Notes: a model not told the origin generated them from the letters alone. A stretch of 64,000 nt of DNA from Lepidodermella squamata (GCA_047495785.1 JBLDXI010000003.1:1364001-1428000), one strand, 5' to 3'. Positions 850 to 42,631 are shown, counted from the first letter of the stretch. Numbers and translations are program-made.

Positions 850-3800
850 ATGGCGTCAGACTTCAGTTTAAGTACGAACGAAAGGAATCCGATCAATTCA
901 AATCGGGCCGTTTTTATCAGTTACAACTGCGTTCAGCGAAATTTGGTCATTCCGCTGTGCTCCAATCTAGTTCCAGCCCAGATTTTCCGTCATGTTTTCG
1001 CTGATTTTCAGAAAAACCCTGACGAAACGTCGGATAATTATGAACAGGCGATTCTTATCGCCGACTACGTCATCATTTTCTTCAGCAACGAGTATCGAAA
1101 TAGCAAGGCGTGTGAGGCTGAGGCGCGCATGATCATGCAACAACGGCGAGGTCCGACGTGTGTCGTTAAATTGTACCCGGCTTTCGATGATTCATCGCTT
1201 GTTGATGGGTTCAGCTTTGCGACTACGATTAGGCTGATGGCTAATGGCCAGAGTATCGATGACGCGGCTGTGGCGTTGACAATGGCTGTTAAGGAACACT
1301 TGGTCATTTTGCCAAATACGAGCCGCGAACAGCAGAAAAAGTGAGTAAAAAATTCCCTAAAATTCCATGTTCTTGGGATTTTTTTCCTTCGAAGTCGAAG
1401 GCTATATAAGCGTCAATGAGTGGCAGTTTCAAAGCGTTCAATTTTCGAATCGACTAATTTCATGAAATTTTGAAACTTGCTACGATCGCTTTTAGTTTGC
1501 CTCAGCGAAGGGTGATGTTGGAATGGGAAACCTGTGAAATTTTCAGATTTGCAAGCATTTCCGAGTTGAAAATTAAAACAATGGGATTTTACCATCGGGA
1601 TCTTTCAAAAATAAAATTGAAATAAAAAACGGGGTGATTACAACGAAAATAGATTTTTAGAAATAAATGATCAACTACTTATTTCTAATAAAATGTTGCA
1701 TAATTATTTGTCTCTGAAATATAATAATAATAATAATAATAGTAATAATAATAATAATAATCAGGGCACTTGAAATTCAGGTAAAAAGTTCAAATAATAA
1801 GGGAACCTCGTTTTCCAAAATAAATTCCAAAATTTTCCAAAAAATTGAAATCCCGTCTTTGCTTCATAATTTGTCACCAAAGGGTCATCCTAACATGGTT
1901 CAACTTTCAATGGCTTCGATTGCCCGGGATAATCCGATGAAAAAGAGAAAAATTCTCAAAATATACCTGCAAGCTGGGAAAAATATTGCTAATTTTTGTT
2001 TCAAAAATTCTGAAGAATTCCTAAATCATCTCTCTCGTCAGGGAGTCGGGTGTCCAACGTTGTTTTCTGGTTTTTCTCTGTTTCAAGGCTAATTCATTAA
2101 TTTTTGAATTTTTATTTTATCTCCATCGGAAACAGCCCAATCAAGTTTGTTGGACTACCTGAAGTCAGCCAGCATTACGACGTGCATGATGAGAATGAAA
2201 TATTGCTCAAACTACAAACTACATCGGCTCTTAAAGGTCAGCCGCGTAATTTTCGACCTCAACATTTTTTTGGCATCAATCCAAAAAGCAATAATTTTAG
2301 TATGCGTCTTTGGAAATTGATACGAAATGATAAAATTCAAAATTCAAAAGTTTTCTATTGACCTGAAAATGGTGGGAAATTCTCCAAAAATCACTGATCA
2401 CCGCTATTTTCGATGAATTGAAACAGGAATTATTTTTGGGATTTTTCATATTTTTTGAAATTTTCTTTTCAATAGGGGGCTTTCTCCTGGTATCTGGTGC
2501 TGGCGGTCTAGGAAAAACAACCCTAGTCGCTCATTTATTACAAAGCAGCCCAACCTTCCTCCAAGATCTCTGCGAATTCGACATCGTACTGTGGCTAAAT
2601 TGCCTGAAATGGCGAGAAAACGACCCTGAAACATTAATCGATTTCCACAAATCACTCGATCAGCTATTCAACCAGGCCGAAATCGAATCTTCGAAACAGA
2701 AACGGAATCAAGGCTCAAATTGCTTACTGGTCTTAGACGACGTTTACTCGACGAAAATTCTCGACGAAATCAGCTCGAAATATTTGAAGATGACCTGTCT
2801 CGTCATTAGCCGCGATAAAGATTTGACCTACTTGTTCAATGGCGTCGTTAAATTAGAAGAACTGAGCGAAAACTCGGTCATCGAGCTGTTCACTAAAAAC
2901 TATCAATTAACGACGTTGACCCGCGAGCAGCTGGAGAATCTGGCTAAATTAAGCTGTGGCCTGCCGCTAATTTGTTCGCTAATTGCCGCGCGATTTCGGG
3001 CTAGGTTAAAAGACAACGCCGCTCAAATTAGCGCGCTTGAATACCGGGCAATTACTAAGGAATTACTCGAAAATTCAACGCGGTCAATCGGCGATATTTT
3101 AGCCTTCACTCTAGAACGGGAAGATTCAGCTTTCAGGCAGACTTTCTACGCATTTTTGCTGTTCGAACCGAATGAGCCGGTGGATATTGACGATTTGGCC
3201 TTGTTGTGGAAATGCCCGTCTAATCATCAGGCTCTTGTTAGGTGTCAGCTATTTATGGGGAAATCGTTGATAAGGCAGGTTAATCGGGATGCTGAAAGTG
3301 GTGATGTTATGCCGAGGTTCACGCTTCATCAACTCATGCATGAAGCGGCAGTGGAAAATGCGTGTGAAAAGCGAGATTTCGCGATCGACTTGAACGAGCT
3401 AAGGTATATTTTATTCAAATAAATTTTATTTAAATTTTTTAATTATTTTTAAAATGTTTAAAATGAAGAATTATTAAACATTTAATTGAATTTAAAAACT
3501 CAAAAGATTGCATAACATTTTGAAATGTCCTAATTACCTATTTTTTTTCGAATTTTTATTTAAACATTTTTTAAGAAATTTATTCGAGAAAAATTCTGGG
3601 AAATTGATTAAAATGTTTTCATATTTTCCCAAGGTACAAAATAGTGACGGGCCATTGTAACCAATCGCTGAAATTGCAAAATTCGTCTCGCCGTGTCGAA
3701 TTGTTGGCAAAAGCTGCCCAGAACAATCAATGGAACCTTCTGAACAAGATTTTCGACCGTCTAGCACCGCGAGATTTGGCTGAAATCAGCCGCAAGAAGT

Positions 3801-6646
3801 GCTCGATCAGCGAAAATAAATCGCTGCTTCACTTTCTGTACTGCAAAAATCAGTTCCAACTTGTTGGGAAAGCGATTTCATTGATTCTTCCAGAGGTCGG
3901 TCCTCAAGTCACTTCAGAAATTTTGCTGGAACTAGATTCGAAGAAAATGTCCCTACTCTGCCAAATCTACGATGAGGAAGATCTACTTGATAACTTTTCT
4001 CAGAGAAAAGGCCTTCTTCAAACTATTGGAAAAATTCCAGAAATTTACGATAAATATGTGCGATCGAAATGGTTGAAGGAAGCTTTGGAGTTGAAGTCGA
4101 AAAACAAGAATTTATTCGTCGCAGCGGTGAAGGGTGACCTGGAACCCTTCAAATCACCCGCGATCAGTCAAGCGGAACTTGATTTCAAAAACGACCGAGG
4201 CGAAACAGTTTTAATGGCAGCCTGTGCGATGGGCCACCTTGAAATCGCTAGACTAATAGTTGAAAAACGCGAAAATCTACTGGACCTTCAAAATGAAAAC
4301 GGCTGGAACGCTGTGACCTTCTCAGCGAGTTACGGTCGGCTGGATTGCGTTAAATTTTTGTTGGAAAAGAATCGCGAATTACTGAAAAGTGAGGAGAAGA
4401 ACTCTGCCTGGACGCCTTTCATGTTCGCTGTTCAACGAAATCATTCGGTCACGGTTGATTTCCTCCTCACAAGTGACTCGGAACAACTTGAGCGGAAAGA
4501 TTTAGACGGCCTCACCTCGTTGATTATAGCCGCTCAATGTGGGCATTTGGACCTTGTGAGATTTTTGATCGGTAAATCAGACGGATCACTCATGCGGAGC
4601 CAAGATTCAAGCAATGGCTGGACCGCGTTCATTCATGCGTGTCGGTATGGTCATTTAGAAGTCGCGAGGTACCTACTAAGCCTAAATTCCGACCAAATCA
4701 CTGATCTGGACCAAAGAGGTCGCACCTGTTTGATCGTCGCTGCTGAAAATAATCAAATTGAGGTCTGCAAATGGTTGGTCTCGCAACGTCCTGATCTATT
4801 GGGTCAGGTTGATATCGACGGCCGAACAGCTCTTCACGCAGCTTCTCAGGCTGGTTTGGTTGAAATCGTGAGATTTTTCGTGGAAACTGACTCAGTTCTA
4901 GTTAAATTTCTCGACAAAAACCGACTGAACCCTTTTGAAATCGCCGTTAAGAACGGCAGGCTCGAGGTGGTTAGATTTCTCGCCGATCAAAAAGACTTGA
5001 TCGCAAAATCCTTGATACCAGCCCTACATCTAGCCTGCGAGAATGGCCATTTAGAAATCGTGAAATTTCTAACAAATCGGATTCCTTACGAAAAGCTGAA
5101 TTCAACAATTGACGACACTGAACGGACTTGCTCAATGTCTGCAGCGATGAATGGTCATATCGATGTGGTTAAGTTCCTATACTTAAAAGCTGGCAAGTCG
5201 ATCTTGTTGTCTAGAGATCGAGAAGGTGCGACTATGTTACTTATGGCTTGTGAGGCGAATCGCTTTGATGTTGTTCGGTTCATTCTCGAGAAGTTGCCCG
5301 ATGGGCCAGCTTGGAAGAATAACGAAAGTCGAAGTGCCTTGATGGTGGCATCGGCAGAAGGACATCTACCAGTTGTGGAGCTTCTTTACGACATGGACCC
5401 TAAACAGGTACTTATTCAAGTAGTTCACAACCTTAATTATGATGCTTTGAAGCTATGAAGTTACTTTCTTATAAGGCCTCGATATCACTATCCCATCTTT
5501 CTCTAATTTGTAGGCAGCATGGCAGGGCGATCATGGTGAGACAGCTCTGATGCTAGCAGCTCACTGTAACCGAGAATCTGTCGTCAAGTTTTTCTGCGAA
5601 CGACAACCAAATCTCGTCGAAATGGTCGATTATTACGCCATTAGCGCAATCATGGTCGCTGCAGTCAGTGAAAACTACGAAATATGCCGAATTCTAGCTG
5701 CCTACTACAGCGAAGACCCCGTCATCTACCCTGGTTACCTCATCCTCCAAGCTATCGATGCTGTGATATCAGATCCGCTGAAACTTCAATCTCTAACGCT
5801 GAAATCAAGTCTGGCTTGTCTACGAATTTTAGCTTTCGAAAATCCGTCAAGTTGCCAGAAAATTACTGCAATCGGGCTACTACCGATTCTCGGTAAATTC
5901 CTCGCAATTTTCCGGACATTCCACATGGAGAATCAACGGGAACCTGCTGACATATCCGAGATCGAACCTGTGGTCATTGATCTCGAAAGGATGTGCTTAG
6001 GAATCCTTGCAAGCGTTTTTGAAGCTGAGGACGTATGTTTGGACGCTGCGAAGCAGTTAGGCAGAGGGCTTCAGATCGAGCTGAGATATCGCTTGCAAAG
6101 CATTTCGCCGGGTATGACAGTTTCAGAAGGGCATTTTTTTGCAGCGCAAATAGCGGCAGTCCTCCTTGCAAAAAGATTAGATGGCATCGATGGGACATTC
6201 CTTACTGAGCAGGGTGAGTCTTTCTCCATTTCGCAAGGAACTTCACTACCAATCTCTGTTTAGAATCATTGGCTGGTGATTTAGCTCTGTTTCTTGATGA
6301 AAAATGGATGACTGAATGCGAACTGGATGCTGAGGGGATGATTCGAAGGGTTGATGTAGATATTTACCTTAATCTTTCAACTTGGCCTGGTGACGAGAAC
6401 GATTTGGATGTAACAGTTGTTAGGAGATTCGGTCTATGGGCTCTGTGGCAGTTGGGCGTTGTAGATCGGCAGAATAGGGATCATTATGGCCGGTTGATTC
6501 GGTCTGCCAAAAGCGTGGAGTCGGTGAGAAGTGGCAAATCTGTGTCGACAAGCTTTCAAGCAATTCTGGAGTCCTACTCGAAGAAGGCTGATAAAATACT
6601 TGCGGAGGTTTCTGCTAAACTGTTGAATGAATTGTTTTCTAGCTGA
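850..6646 (+). CDS. NLR-like STAND protein: TIR - NB-ARC - ankyrin repeats - ZYG11/ZER1-like ARM domain (~1458 aa, 6 exons)
   Basis: Exons 850-1340, 2136-2236, 2476-3403, 3634-5407, 5514-6213, 6264-6646 join in frame through GT-AG introns (4377 nt). TIR: VFISY...SKACEAEA. NB-ARC: Walker A GAGGLGKT, Walker B LLVLDDV, GLPL, LHQ at the MHD position. Many GxTxLxxAxxxGH ankyrin repeats. The C-terminus matches remembered ZYG11B motifs. Confidence 0.88.
1721..1761. repeat. (AAT)n microsatellite in intron 1
   Basis: Directly visible ataataat run with one interruption. Confidence 0.95.
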
Positions 6647-34510: not shown

Positions 34511-35614
34511 ATGGATCGTGTTATGCGTGAAACAGCTGGGCAAGCGTCGTTTTTATTCACCTCCGAATCAGTCGGCGAAGGTCATCCGGACAAATTATGC
34601 GATCAGATAAGCGACGCTGTAGTCGATGCCTTCCTCGCCGTGGATGCCGATGCCAAAGTTGCCTGTGAAAGCGCTGTCAAGTCCGATGAGGTCTATGTCT
34701 TCGGCGAATTCACTTCAACCGCCGCTGATCGGGTCAACATCGACGCAGTGGTGCGTGACGTCATTCGTAGCGTTGGCTACAGCGATGCTGAAACCGGCAT
34801 TGACCCGGAAACATGCCAAGTCCGCGTGAAACTCGAGGGCCAGAGCCCAGAAATCGCGTCAGCTGTTCACATTGATAAATCAGTTGAAACTACAGGTGCT
34901 GGTGATCAGGGTATGATGTTTGGCTATGCGACCGATGAAACGCCCGAATTTATGCCACTTTCACTTGTTTTGGCTCATAAGCTCAACAAACGTATTGCGG
35001 AGCTGCGGCGAAGCGGGGTCTTACCCTGGGCAATGCCTGATTCGAAAAGCCAGGTTACGGTCGAATACAACTGGCAAGGAGGAACCGTGGTCCCGGTTGC
35101 AGTCACGGCTGTTGTCATATCGATACAACACAAAGCAACGGTCACGCTCGACCAGTTGCGCCGGGCTTTGTTGCAGCATGTTGTGAAACATGTTATACCG
35201 GAGAAACTTCTCAGCGACCGAACTGAGATGATCCTCAACCCAAGCGGTTCGTTCATCGTTGGCGGGCCCAAGGGCGATGCGGGTTTGACAGGCCGGAAAA
35301 TCATAGTCGATACGTATGGGGGTTGGGGCGCTCATGGCGGCGGTGCGTTCTCGGGCAAGGATCCGACCAAAGTCGACCGATCAGGCGCCTACGCGGCGCG
35401 CTGGGCTGCGAAATCGCTCGTGGCTGCTGGGCTATGTCGCCGGTGTCTTGTGCAGCTGTCCTACGCTATAGGTCGTTGTGAGCCGGTGAGTATCACTGTC
35501 TTTGATTATGGCTCCGCGAAAGGCGACCTGACGGCGGATGATGTATGTATTTTTAATCCGGTAAAGCAAAGACAGAAAACTTACATTATGAAAGCTCAAC
35601 TTAAAAATGCCTAA
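34511..35614 (+). CDS. MAT: S-adenosylmethionine synthetase (MAT/MetK); last ~50 aa of the family not found
   Basis: [52 protein letters not shown]. Similarity stops at a GTATGT donor-like site at 35543. Confidence 0.9.
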
Positions 35615-38060
35615 GCTTCTAAACTTTGCGATGGCGCTCCTCGTCATCATCGGAACGCAATGCTCCTTAGCTCAGAGACCGCCTAGGAAAATCCGAATTC
35701 TCGCTTTTGTTATGTATTCTGGATTCCCGCCATTTGACGGCAAAACCTGCTCCGCCGCTATGAATGTCGCAGTTTCTGAAGCTAACAAGCGAGTTGACCT
35801 ACTGCCTGGCTACTTAATCGAAATGACATTTGCAGACGAAGGCGCTGGAGCTTCAAAAACAGCTAGTAACATAATGTCTTACATCAACTCATTCGATGGT
35901 GGAAGTTCCGACGTAAGGTCGCCGGTAATGATCGGAGCCTATCAAACCCCTGGTTGCTTACCAATAACTCCAATGCTGCCAGCAATATGTTCGGTCATGC
36001 TAGGGATCGGCTGTAGATCTCCTGCTGCAACGGATAATCGGCAGAAGTACAAAAATCTCTACTGGGCAAGAGGGCCCTCTGAAATGATAGCATTCAACCG
36101 CGTCCAATTCATCAGGAAATTCGCCCCATCTTGGAATAAACTCGCAATCATGACAAATACCCTCAACGAGTTCGACTATTTGACTGCAAGGTATTTTCAT
36201 AATGTTGCGACCAAGGTTGGATTTCGAATTATCTGGTACAACGCGATTTTCGGGATGAGTGAAGAAACTGCTGGTTCTCTTAAGGACAGCCAGGCTAGAG
36301 TCATCATCATTGACCTTCAAGGAGCTTTATTCATCGAAGTTATGTGTAAACTTTACTGGAAGAGTGTTACTGGGCCAAGATATGTATTCATAACCCCTAC
36401 TTACAACTTCATAGATCCGAGGACTCAGCCTCCAGAGCCATTTCCAGGTTGCTCGAGGGCAATGTTCTCTAGTCAGTTGGAAATCGTCATCTTCATCGGT
36501 CAAATGTTGGGGGCGATTGAAAATAACGGCATAACCTCGTTAGGCTACGACTTGCCTGCATTTGAAGCAAAATTTGATAATGCAACCAACAGCTTGCGAT
36601 CTGCTGAGTATGGTCTAAGACATGTGTGTCATGACTCCGTAATGCAAGCTATGTTGATACTGAATGAAACTAACAACAAACTACAGCTTCAACACAATCT
36701 GTCTCTCGATGCGATTTCGCAGTTTCCTAACCTCGTCTCGAAAATCGCCAATGATTCTGCAGGGCTGGTGACATTCACCGGACTTAGAATAGGATTTGCT
36801 GCTTATTCCAGCCGGCTTCATTTCGATGACGAGCCTTACGTTGTAGCACAGTGGTCGAATGAAACTGGCTATCGATCTATCCTTAAGATAATGCATGAAG
36901 TTCGGACGGATTTGTTCAACGACTCGACGTATACTTTCAAAAGATTTGGCGAGCTCAAATGGAGAACGCCTAGTGGTCTGCCTCCTATTGATTACCCTAG
37001 TCAAGTTGAAGTGATCGATAGGGTGTCTAAAACATCTTTCGGGGTCATTACATGTCTATCGTTGGTCCTATCCCTCTCGCAAATTGCTTTGCTTTTTGTT
37101 ATGAAGTCAAGGATGAGTTCGAATGATCTGTGGTTCAAAAGCTCGAAGGTATTCACTACTTGCTCATGCTTGGTCGAAAATCTAGCGGCTATCATGTTTG
37201 TCCTAACTGCATTCGAGAAGGCTTCTATTAACGCTACCTGTCGATTTCAAGCCGGTCTATTCCTCCTCGGAATATCGATAGCTAACGGCCATCATTTTGC
37301 TAGAGCTCTGGCTATTCGTCTCAGTATCAGGGAAGGAATAAGAAGCCGAAAGATTCAGATAAATCCAGGCAATACGGCTTCAATACGCACGAGAAGCTAC
37401 TCAACCTCAAAACGAGAAAGGCGTGCAAGTGCATGGGAAGTTACAACTCGAGTTCCAATCAACAACCTTCGACCCGAAATATTCCTCTTTTCGCTTTTCA
37501 TCATTCTAAACTTGATTATCTTCATAGCCTGGTTCACAACCGATCCGCTACTGCATAGGATAAAACAAGTTGGACCTGTGAAGTACCTTGAGGTTGAAGA
37601 TGTCGAGCTAACTCAAAAAGCTCAGTCTTGCGAACCTATTCATGATTCAACTCCATGGATATTTGTGCTTTTCTCCATTCACGGCATCGCTTTGTTTTCA
37701 ACCATCAGCATGTGCTTTGAGATAAACAGTTTCAAGATTTTGATGCCTGAAAATACGCAGCTTGCTTGCATGAGGATAGCTAGTTTGGGCTCGACCAGCT
37801 TACTCGCCGCCATGTTAACAGTGTATTATCTACTTCACAATTCCTTTGCTAAACAATCGATGGTGGTCGCTGTAGCTTTATTAATTCTATCTTCCGGATC
37901 GTATGGCATAACGTTTTACCCATTTTTCAAACGAAGGCAAGAGGAAACTGAGCCGAATGGGTTAAATGGCTTGAATTCAGTGTACGGCAGCTCTCTAAAT
38001 CAAAATCGTAGTGTGAAAAGTTCTCATCATAGAAAAGGATCATTTTTGGCTATTAATTAG
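35607..38060 (+). CDS. Class C GPCR, GABA-B-receptor-like (intronless)
   Basis: Signal peptide; Venus-flytrap motifs ([32 protein letters not shown]); 7 TM segments with WFTTDPL; no Cys-rich linker. Confidence 0.88.
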
Positions 38061-40509: not shown

Positions 40510-42631
40510 TTAACAAGCCTCCGCACATTCTAGTTCTAGAATTTTGATTCGGTCCTTATCGTCCAAAAACTTGAGAATTGCAGGACCATCCGGATCACTT
40601 GCCAAATAACTTTCCAGATCAGACCGATTCATTCGTAGTATTGCTTTTTCGATAACGCTCATCGCATGATGAGCATCTTGGCCTTGAAATTCACCGCGTT
40701 TCACCGATGCGAAGAAAGAGCTGAGCAGAGTCCTTCTCCCAATACTTTGCCTGCAAAGATCGAGTAGATTTGAGGGATCGAGTTTCGAAACTATTTCGTC
40801 TAATAGATGCCATCGTTTGTTCGTGAATGCCTGAGAAAGGACTTCGCTACACTTCAGGATTCCTTTCGGCCTAACAGGCCCGTAACAACAGTCCCCAATA
40901 GCAATCCTTAACCGCAGTTGAGCCAAGGAATTTGCGAAATTCCGTGATTCCAACGCGTTTTTCAACAAAGACTCATAAATGAGAGGATGAAGTTTGAAGT
41001 ACGTCTCTTCGCCGATTGAAATGCATTGCAGGAAAGATTTGAACACAAATTGCTGACATTTAGCTGTTGCCTGGTGCAGGGAATTGAGTCGCCATACAAC
41101 TGAAAGATCTTCACACGGAACTAGCTCACCAGGCTCGAAGAGTAAAAATGCATAGAAAATCCGTCTGAGATTCGATTCAGTGATATTCAGGCCACATTCA
41201 ACAAGACCTCCGACTGGGTTGATGTTGGATATAATGTATTTACCCTGGTGCTCAGGAGAGGCCGTCATCAAAGCCTCGTAAACTCCTCTAGGAATCGGCA
41301 GTGAGTAGTCTTTGAGCCTGCAAACGAAACGAGACCCAACGAGGTTGATTGCAATGGGTAGGCCTCTTGTAACTTTGGCTAGGTTCTTCATTTCTTCATC
41401 ATCCAACTTGCCACGTAGTTTGTAGACACTCTCTAGAATGTTGATGACCCTCTTCTCATCCAAACTCGCAAGGTATTGAGCGCTGCATATCTTCTGTAGG
41501 TTGAATTGAAGATGGATTTTCGATAGGATGTCCAAGTCGTTGGTAAGGGCGATACACGGTATATCAGGCCAGTTTTCATGGAAACACTCGAGTTCATTCA
41601 CGTTTTTGACACTATCAAGGACGAATAAGATTCTCTTCGGTACCGAGCCGTCTTCCTCTGTTGGCATGAGCTCGCTGATAGTTTTTGCGAATTCATCTTC
41701 GTCAAAACAAGTTCTGTTGTTCCGGTACCATTTCGCGCAGTCGCACCACACTACGTAATCGAAGCCACATGTTTCGCGAAGGAAGTCTTGTTTCGAGTTT
41801 ACAATTCGGCTTAACAAGACAGTTTTTCCGACTCCACTTACACCGGTGACTAGCAGCATCTTCACTACGTTGGAGGCCTCGAATAAGGGACGAATGTGAA
41901 GACTCTCCAAGGCTTCCAAAAGCTCGCGTTCTCGATGTTCGATCAAGTAATAAGGCTCTCCAATAAACTTTGGTACATTGATAAGCTGTAACCTGTGGAA
42001 TAGAGATAGGAAATGTAAGGCCAGTAAATTTGAGCTAAGTTAAGTTCAATTTAACATGAAAACCAAAAACTAATGAGATACCAAGCTCGATTTTTACGAA
42101 AATGTGAAGGGAAATGGACTCACTTTTCGGGCCGTGGACTGCGTCTCTTCAAATGCTGCGTAGCCATGAATTTCTTGAGTGCAGTGGCAACTTTTTCACA
42201 GGCAACATCAAACGGCTCATCTGGCGTGACTGAGAAGTCGATTTGACCCGCGGGTGGGTTGCCCCCTGGCAGTTGGTAGTGACTGAACGGCGATAAGCGG
42301 ATTAGGAAAATGGGTTTATCGATCGACGCCATGATAGCCGCCTCCTTCTCACACATGGCACTTTTCTGGTAGTCGTCGCATGTTATCAGTATGACAAATT
42401 CCGTAGACTCAAGATCCTGCAAGCAATGAAAATTCAACAATTTCGGAATTGAGATAAGAAATTCCTTACCTCACAGACTTTTTCCAGATCTTTTGGGCCT
42501 GTGTCTGGAGATTGGTTGTAGTCGATATTCATATTGCTCGAAAAAATGTGTTTCGACATCAAATAGTTGCAAATTTGCCGGACAGTGTCCTTCTGGGCGC
42601 AGCAATAGGTCACGCAGGCTAACACGCTCAT
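40510..42631 (-). CDS. TIR - NB-ARC protein without a repeat sensor (paralogue of 850-6646)
   Basis: Exons 42631-42470, 42416-42124, 41992-40510. TIR SAMCEKEA; Walker A GVSGVGKT, Walker B LFVLDSV, GLPI. Shares FYAFLLFEP and a phase-2 post-TIR intron with the long paralogue. Confidence 0.85.

Follow-up and report, generated by a model that had tools for sequence, protein, structure and literature searches.

A gene at positions 850-6646 (+) of a 64,000-nt stretch of DNA from Lepidodermella squamata (GCA_047495785.1 JBLDXI010000003.1:1364001-1428000) is predicted to encode a TIR-NB-ARC-ankyrin receptor with an armadillo (ARM) tail, and this tail descends from ZYG11. The whole stretch, called the window below, is eukaryotic DNA with short GT-AG introns and forms part of contig 3 in a genome of 121 Mb and 151 contigs. 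The part of ZYG11 to which the tail corresponds is the one that binds glycine N-degrons in human ZYG11B, and only one of the five polar residues of that glycine pocket is left in the window protein. We lean towards the view that the gene encodes a lineage-specific receptor in which the captured ZYG11 ARM module serves as a functional integrated sensor or bait.

Gene model and domain architecture

The gene model was obtained by open reading frame (ORF) reading and scripted splicing. It consists of six exons encoding 1458 amino acids (aa) in the order TIR, NB-ARC, about 14 ankyrin repeats and ARM tail. The spliced frame is continuous over 1458 codons, with its sole stop (TGA, 6644-6646) at the end, and the introns of 795, 239, 230, 106 and 50 nt all have GT-AG borders. 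Translation may start at ATG 850 or at the in-frame ATG 748. The closest paralogue of the gene is located on the same contig (G000:C3:3139k) and is intronless, with a 1008-codon uninterrupted frame and a 967-aa ORF, and it served as a reference for several of the features listed here.

850..1340 (+): exon 1, TIR domain, model aa 1-164 (Pfam TIR_2; donor AAA/GTGAGT)
1120..1122 (+): codon GAG of Glu91, at the catalytic-Glu position, motif S-K-A-C-E-A-E (CEAEA) (profile alignment)
2136..2236 (+): exon 2, linker between TIR and NB-ARC (GT-AG borders, matching phases; collinear with the uninterrupted ORF of the closest paralogue)
2476..3403 (+): exon 3, NB-ARC NTPase (Pfam NB-ARC)
3634..5407 (+): exon 4, helical linker and ankyrin array (Pfam Ank_2; collinear with the paralogue)
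5514..6213 (+): exon 5, last two ankyrin repeats (5514-~5720) running straight into the first ARM part (~5727-6213) (one open frame)
6264..6646 (+): exon 6, second ARM part (LWALW and NxxHYxxLI motifs) and C-terminal helical tail (preceding intron 50 nt, GT-AG)

A preliminary description of this DNA had proposed a TIR-STAND-ankyrin receptor with a ZYG11B/ZER1-type ARM domain at 850-6646. Pfam and BLASTP located all of these parts there, and the two junctions that it had named, 5407/5514 and 6213/6264, coincide exactly with exon borders of the spliced model. Exon 1 matches Pfam TIR_2 (PF13676) at 2.9e-9 (37.9 bits against a cut-off of 28), exon 3 matches NB-ARC (PF00931) at 2e-14 (53.9 bits against 23.5), and Ank_2 extends from exon 4 into the start of exon 5 at 6.8e-78. 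The NB-ARC motifs are intact in the translation, namely the P-loop GAGGLGKT (2496-2519), the Walker B motif LLVLDD, GLPL and an MHD-like LMHE. A TIR effector, an NB-ARC NTPase and a C-terminal region of ankyrin and ARM repeats therefore stand in one frame, which is the tripartite layout of STAND/NLR-like receptors.

A profile built from this TIR and two further TIRs of the same genome matches the TIR structures of Cat1, RPS4, AtTIR, ROQ1 and RUN1. In the profile alignment, C-x-A-E stands opposite C-V-R-E of RPS4, C-L-D-E of AtTIR and C-W-D-E of Cat1, i.e. the WCxxE motif, whose Glu is the catalytic residue in these three TIR families. Since C-x-A-E is aligned with WCxxE, Glu91 lies at the catalytic position, and the retained Glu that had been pointed out beforehand does align with that of the solved TIR NADases. 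Retention of this position suggests that the TIR may have NADase activity.

The fusion of ankyrin and ARM repeats needs no splice prediction, because the transition lies inside exon 5 in a single open frame: Ank_2 covers the first 52 residues of the exon and the BLASTP match to ZYG11 runs from 5787 onward. The exon-5 frame opens precisely at the acceptor AG, and its first ATG (5550) lies within an ankyrin helix. Upstream of this exon, the main alignment with the closest paralogue (2e-106) begins where the TIR ends, continues over exon 2, NB-ARC and the linker into the ankyrins, and spans junctions 1/2, 2/3 and 3/4 collinearly. The product of the 5407/5514 junction (...LYDMDPKQ / AAWQGDHGETALMLAAH...) is matched only in a separate, off-register ankyrin-ankyrin high-scoring segment pair with the same paralogue (2e-9), so that junction 4/5 makes a regular ankyrin repeat, and this match is not evidence of collinearity at that place. 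Moreover, the DNA of 5600-5900, which spans the ankyrin-to-ARM transition, was found in sequencing runs from two studies that carry different organism labels, at word shares of 0.83 and 0.74; one of the two is possibly the assembly's own source. Sequence logic and homology thus argue for placing exons 5-6 in the same transcript as exons 1-4. If intron 4 were retained, an in-frame stop (5456-5458) would follow 17 codons past exon 4, giving a tail-less TIR-NB-ARC-ankyrin protein, the usual architecture of the family.

The tail and its descent from ZYG11

The tail was identified by comparison with the ZYG11 genes of its own lineage. BLASTP of the tail gave 5e-15 against P0052, a ZYG11 fragment from the environmental assembly of a related organism (65% identical to the ZYG11 orthologue of this genome), 1e-10 with 31% identity over 129 aa against that orthologue itself, and an E-value of 0.002 against a 250-aa fragment of human ZYG11B, in the register given by the preliminary description. 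In the human alignment, 'TLKSSLACLRILAFENPSSCQ' lies opposite 'TLKFTLSALWNLTDESPTTCR' and CLGILASVFEA opposite VLGLLNNIAEV, while HFFAAQIAAVL, SLAGDL, KWMTECE, LWALW and HYGRLI sit in matching columns of a 42-row alignment; the C-terminal strings quoted earlier are therefore present and in the same order as in ZYG11B. The spliced tail aligns with the genome's own ZYG11 over 222 columns, from LACLRIL to HYGRLIR and through exon 6, and the Smith-Waterman score is 14.8 standard deviations above 500 shuffles. The own ZYG11 orthologue itself matches ZYG11B structures at 1e-18 and the Pfam models LRR_Zer-1 and ZER1-like_2nd. Furthermore, a six-frame search of the genome with the ARM part of exon 5 found only one other place, which is this orthologue (E 0.003). 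As judged from its sequence, the tail is a homologue of the degron-binding ARM module of ZYG11, and it is ZYG11-type rather than ZER1-type or a generic ARM domain.

The state of the glycine pocket could be read directly from the alignment with human ZYG11B. In ZYG11B, W522, N523, D526, N567 and E570 bind the N-terminal residue, and exchange of each for Ala abolishes binding in both ZYG11B and ZER1 (PMC9741652). The same five residues of ZYG11B were found to be required for degron binding, with D526 and N567 holding the alpha-amino group (bioRxiv 10.1101/2024.06.24.600508). All five are invariant in 41 family members (41-row ZYG11 alignment), including the three canonical genes of this genome. 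The corresponding positions in the window protein are the following.

5823-5825 (+): R1202, opposite ZYG11B W522
5826-5828 (+): I1203, opposite N523
5835-5837 (+): F1206, opposite D526
6012-6014 (+): S1265, opposite N567
6021-6023 (+): E1268, opposite E570

Only the Glu is kept, exactly as the preliminary description had it in calling the pocket partly kept, with Trp, Asp and Asn replaced. The mapping is secure because the index in the human fragment plus 478 reproduces the published numbering. Across the module, 26 of the 65 family columns conserved at 90% or more are kept, mostly in the hydrophobic core, and the AYRSFxPFxPL motif is degenerate; on the extended surfaces, K515 and E644 are kept and V646I is conservative. 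In addition, LRR_Zer-1 has no match in the N-terminal 1160 aa, and the VHL/BC box, the leucine-rich repeats (LRR) and the first ARM subdomain are all absent from the window protein, so that no link to Cullin-2 is expected. With four of the five pocket residues lost, reading of a canonical Gly N-terminus is no longer expected either, and the loss of the E3 parts would leave the protein unable to ubiquitinate. The tail is thus predicted to be a ZYG11-derived scaffold and not a working ZYG11/ZER1 substrate receptor.

In a maximum-likelihood tree, ZER1-type and ZYG11-type proteins are separated with support of 100/100 and the window protein falls on the ZYG11 side. Together with BLASTP this bears out ZYG11 descent, the first half of the "ZYG11B/ZER1-type" label of the preliminary description, and removes the ZER1 half. 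The best tree groups the window protein with the lineage's own ZYG11 genes (76/83). A loop insertion of 15-24 residues between the FRxF helix and the xxLGLLNN helix is common to the window protein, both ZYG11 genes of the genome and P0052. In the ZYG11-type genes of the genome it measures 18-24 aa. The other three ZYG11 rows printed (human, fish and P0054) lack it, and since the family consensus is empty at this place, few of the 41 rows can carry it. For the tree, a column had to be occupied in 50% or more of the rows, and the insertion was thereby excluded. The single intron position in the tail (LTEQ/ESLAG) differs from the introns that flank the same module in the own ZYG11 gene. We conclude that the tail was copied from a ZYG11 gene within the lineage and then diverged fast. 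The insertion and the canonical genes, two of ZYG11 type and one of ZER1 type, are located as follows.

5910..5980 (+): loop insertion (about FHMENQREPADISEIEPVVID) (multiple alignment)
G000:C9:706-709k: canonical ZYG11/ZER1 gene (L002/L020)
G000:C9:1607k: canonical ZYG11/ZER1 gene (L022)
G000:C21:1407k: canonical ZYG11/ZER1 gene (L025)

The closest outside matches of the own ZER1 and ZYG11 genes, 56% and 65% identical, respectively, come from environmental assemblies. The ZER1-type gene has its whole ARM domain in one 396-codon frame.

For the exon-5 part of the tail, a single-sequence AlphaFold model was unusable (pLDDT 55), and the model made with a 52-row family alignment showed ARM repeats at pLDDT 88. 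ZYG11B obtained the highest TM-scores in Foldseek (0.59-0.66, against about 0.5), and the top three entries in VIA-align were all ZYG11B (Z 16.8-15.9, rmsd 2.0 A over 134 residues, chain 492-630). In the comparison with generic ARM proteins that had been suggested beforehand, ZYG11B is ahead by TM-score, and not by E-value, where designed ARM proteins were not separated from it.

A number of results weigh against the reading of the gene as a receptor with a captured ZYG11 module. On the structural side, the Foldseek E-values for the alignment-based model tie ZYG11B with designed ARM proteins, the VIA margin over beta-catenin (15.1) is only about 1-1.7 Z, and the test is circular, a ZYG11 alignment having gone into the model; its outcome is consistent with homology and gives no independent proof of it. 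Pfam PF22964 (ZER1-like_2nd) misses the tail, with nothing from hmmscan at E <= 1, and a whole-genome scan with it (E <= 0.1) found the three canonical genes and not the window gene. Hhalign against a 43-row, ZER1-dominated family profile was weak (P 0.045 for exon 5, P 0.01 for exon 6 alone). Among 1.84 billion representative proteins, an exhaustive phmmer search with the ARM part of exon 5 brought up no orthologue and no relative of the tail. At about 9.5 changes per column, the window protein sits on a very long branch, which leaves its exact position in the tree unsure. Finally, none of the sequencing runs listed for the gene DNA was recorded as RNA.

Some further searches are of the same kind. 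In the complete set of PDB sequences, phmmer with exon 5 and with exon 6 found no ZYG11B or ZER1 at E <= 10, the matches being ankyrin proteins only, plus PACRG at about 0.4. The ESM Atlas features of the tail belong to generic ARM-like clusters (Ric8, CFAP69, V-ATPase H), none of them ZYG11-specific. The single phmmer match among the 1.84 billion proteins was a repeat-rich protein aligned in 11 stretches, which was rejected as spurious. Despite their weakness, both hhalign placements fall at the matching place, that of exon 6 on LWAxWAL...NxxxY. It is the lineage's own ZYG11 genes that settle the identity of the tail, where curated or distant references fail, and the evidence that discriminates for ZYG11 is the sequence and not the structure.

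The receptor family in the genome

The genome contains at least 88 paralogous NB-ARC places, and the NB-ARC of the window gene is 40% identical to the closest of them. The closest paralogue is 31% identical and collinear from the tail of the TIR through the ankyrins, and shares the TIR motif S..C.AE. It is likewise a TIR-NB-ARC-ankyrin protein, and has nothing further behind its ankyrins. Of some 17 paralogue frames listed, ten were cut at the edge of their locus or stopped short of the ankyrin array, which applies to the frames of the first eleven loci. Seven paralogues could be followed to an end within the fetched DNA, of which six end in ankyrin repeats and one in a short tail without a recognised domain. 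None of these seven, which include the six longest frames fetched whole, has an ARM tail. Compared with the paralogues seen to their end, the window gene alone has the ARM tail, with two additional introns around this tail, and the tail looks like a one-off acquisition. A word-based search with the 967-aa closest paralogue returned one weak ankyrin match and no relatives of the receptor family from outside.

A second NB-ARC paralogue is located in the window itself (40510-41946, -), as a 478-aa ORF with Pfam NB-ARC at 5.4e-8 and a weak APAF-1-like winged-helix domain; it is 36% identical to the window gene.

Possible roles, known systems and neighbouring genes

In STAND receptors the NB-ARC is kept inactive by the C-terminal repeats as long as no ligand is bound; once one binds, the protein oligomerises and the clustered TIRs become active. 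By analogy, and with modest confidence, we prefer the reading of the window protein as a functional integrated sensor or bait. The ARM module of one of the lineage's own ZYG11 genes was captured at the far end of the sensor arm, the captured part being the one crystallised as the Gly/N-degron reader (ZYG11B ~492-728). The armadillo scaffold was kept while four of the five polar pocket residues and all E3-ligase parts were lost. With its pocket now Arg/Ile/Phe/Ser, the tail most likely offers an extra binding surface, either as a re-specified sensor or as a bait. Engagement of a partner could release the NB-ARC switch, and the released protein may oligomerise and bring the TIRs, with the catalytic Glu kept, together for NAD+ cleavage or signalling. 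The immune role, activation by oligomerisation, enzyme activity of the TIR and any ligand are all to be understood in this conditional sense.

A narrower form of this reading, which we consider rather unlikely, is a strict integrated decoy, in which the tail mimics ZYG11 and acts solely as a bait for proteins with which pathogens hijack or block it. The tail comes from a host protein, forms the C-terminus of the sensor arm and has lost its original ligand pocket, as would be expected of a decoy. It is also known that viral proteins target ZYG11B, as SARS-CoV-2 ORF10 does in the Gly pocket and on extended surfaces (bioRxiv 10.1101/2024.06.24.600508), and plant NLRs with integrated domains act in this way (review PMC9528084). 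However, the only viral binder on record occupies exactly the pocket that is lost here, the animal has no known pathogen, and no other examined member of the family has a foreign domain, so that integration is no general habit of the family. The preliminary description had named a decoy of the N-degron pathway as an alternative, which may still hold; its main proposal was that protease-generated neo-N-termini are recognised and that this is coupled to STAND oligomerisation and TIR signalling. In that case the ARM tail would still read Gly or small residues exposed by pathogen proteases. Although the tail is derived from exactly the degron-reading module, with Glu570, K515 and E644 kept and only a conservative change at 646, and although human ZYG11B reads the protease-made Gly end of NLRP1 (bioRxiv 10.1101/2024.06.24.600508), we regard this as very improbable. 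The pocket is R/I/F/S/E instead of the required and invariant W/N/D/N/E, a single Ala mutation at any of these positions is enough to abolish binding (PMC9741652), both holders of the alpha-amino group, D526 and N567, are gone, and AYRSFxPFxPL is degenerate.

The remaining explanations deny the tail a function or deny the gene. It could be that the tail is an accident, acquired by recent fusion or exon capture and now tolerated or decaying, and that the working part is TIR-NB-ARC-ankyrin only. The very long branch, the loss of most polar family signatures, the lack of an orthologue, the single such gene in the genome and the family's usual architecture that retention of intron 4 would restore all fit this account. 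On the other hand, the 360 codons of the tail are free of stops across two exons whose splice sites are good, at a GC content of about 40%, the hydrophobic repeat core is preferentially kept, and AlphaFold threads the tail confidently onto the ARM fold, and we hold an accident to be unlikely as well. Least probable of all is an artefact, that is, an assembly chimera or a wrong gene model in which 5514-6646 is a separate ankyrin-ARM gene. Exon 5 has an ATG at 5550, which could serve as a start for such a gene, but it falls midway along an ankyrin helix, and the frame opens exactly at the acceptor AG. Moreover, joining 5407 to 5514 restores a regular ankyrin repeat, which can be aligned with the ankyrins of the paralogue, and the ankyrin-ARM join lies within one exon, in DNA recovered by two studies, one of them maybe the assembly source.

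Four known systems resemble the predicted receptor in part. The C-terminal ARM of ZYG11B/ZER1 (PDB 7EP0-7EP5, 7XYS-7XYX) shares with the tail the homology of the whole module (ZYG11B ~492-728), the order of the motifs and Glu570, whereas the window tail sits behind the ankyrin repeats of a STAND NTPase and has four of its five pocket residues replaced. In human cells a ZYG11-type module is linked to an NLR-type receptor through NLRP1 and CRL2-ZYG11B/ZER1; there, however, module and receptor are distinct proteins, and the N-terminus of cleaved NLRP1 is degraded at the instigation of ZYG11B, whereas here both are in one chain without sites for the ligase partners. SARM1, an ARM-SAM-TIR NADase, also joins an armadillo domain and a catalytic-Glu TIR in one protein, and its ARM is a ligand-sensing regulator of the TIR that binds NMN/NAD+. 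Since the ARM of SARM1 regulates its TIR, activation of a TIR under ARM control is feasible. The ARM of SARM1 is, however, N-terminal and not known to be related to ZYG11, and SARM1 oligomerises via its SAM domain, in place of which an NB-ARC switch is present here.

The closest parallel in layout is offered by plant NLRs with an integrated domain (NLR-ID), such as RRS1-WRKY, RGA5-HMA and Pik-1-HMA, whose integrated decoys often lose the site of their original activity. As in these, a host-derived domain with its original activity site lost lies beyond the repeat sensor of a TIR-headed NB-ARC receptor; it stands outside the tripartite core and is absent from the paralogues seen to their end. 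The differences are that the window gene is animal, that its sensor is made of ankyrin repeats and not LRR, that the integrated domain is an N-degron reader module, and that no paired helper or effector is known. In the literature searched, no paper combines 'ZYG11' and 'NB-ARC', which agrees with the preliminary description, where no account of this architecture was known; the gene would represent an animal case of the NLRs with integrated domains, with a type of domain not described before in that literature. The boldest proposal, that it is the first animal counterpart of a plant NLR-ID, in which the receptor guards the N-degron machinery with a disarmed ZYG11 reader as bait and fires on a pathogen binder, is decidedly doubtful.

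Integrated domains are a central idea in plant immunity and are used to discover pathogen targets, and they are hardly documented in animals. The window gene is an animal NB-ARC receptor with a domain of traceable origin, from a protein which in humans is both a trigger of NLRP1 activation and a viral target. If the tail is indeed a sensor or bait, animals would have reached the same receptor-engineering trick independently, and the tail could be used as bait to find what attacks or engages invertebrate ZYG11. Under the bait reading in particular, this would be a convergent integrated-decoy strategy in animals and would suggest that pathogens have targeted ZYG11 since ancient times. Even with an inert tail, the gene would be a clean case of domain capture that can be dated, in a family of receptors that is expanding rapidly. 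That the Gly pocket was lost is also a caution that homology to a degron reader does not transfer its specificity.

Several other genes around the members of this family may be mentioned. The TIRs most like that of the window gene, with the S..C.AE motif, are encoded at L017 883-1980 (+) and L018 2283-1477 (-), the former matching TIR_2 at 4.9e-21. Both have an ARM-like helical region ahead of the TIR in the same frame (with a weak V-ATPase_H_N match in L017), which is a SARM1-like layout; no SAM was seen in these frames. The upstream neighbour of the window gene, on the opposite strand about 1.7-2.3 kb before the start of the window (L031 5703-6266 (-), equal to G000:C3:1361703-1362266), is a 187-aa ORF with two transmembrane helices. 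It matches SLATT_1 weakly, at E 3.5e-4 and with 21 bits where the cut-off is 26.3, and its family assignment is insecure. In addition, intronless ORFs of 750-817 aa occur in the window at 35607-38060 (+) and at L019 22-2280 and 3579-5939 (+). They encode a large extracellular region of ligand-binding type and several transmembrane helices, resemble family C G-protein-coupled receptors, and adjoin NB-ARC paralogues at two loci of contig 3.

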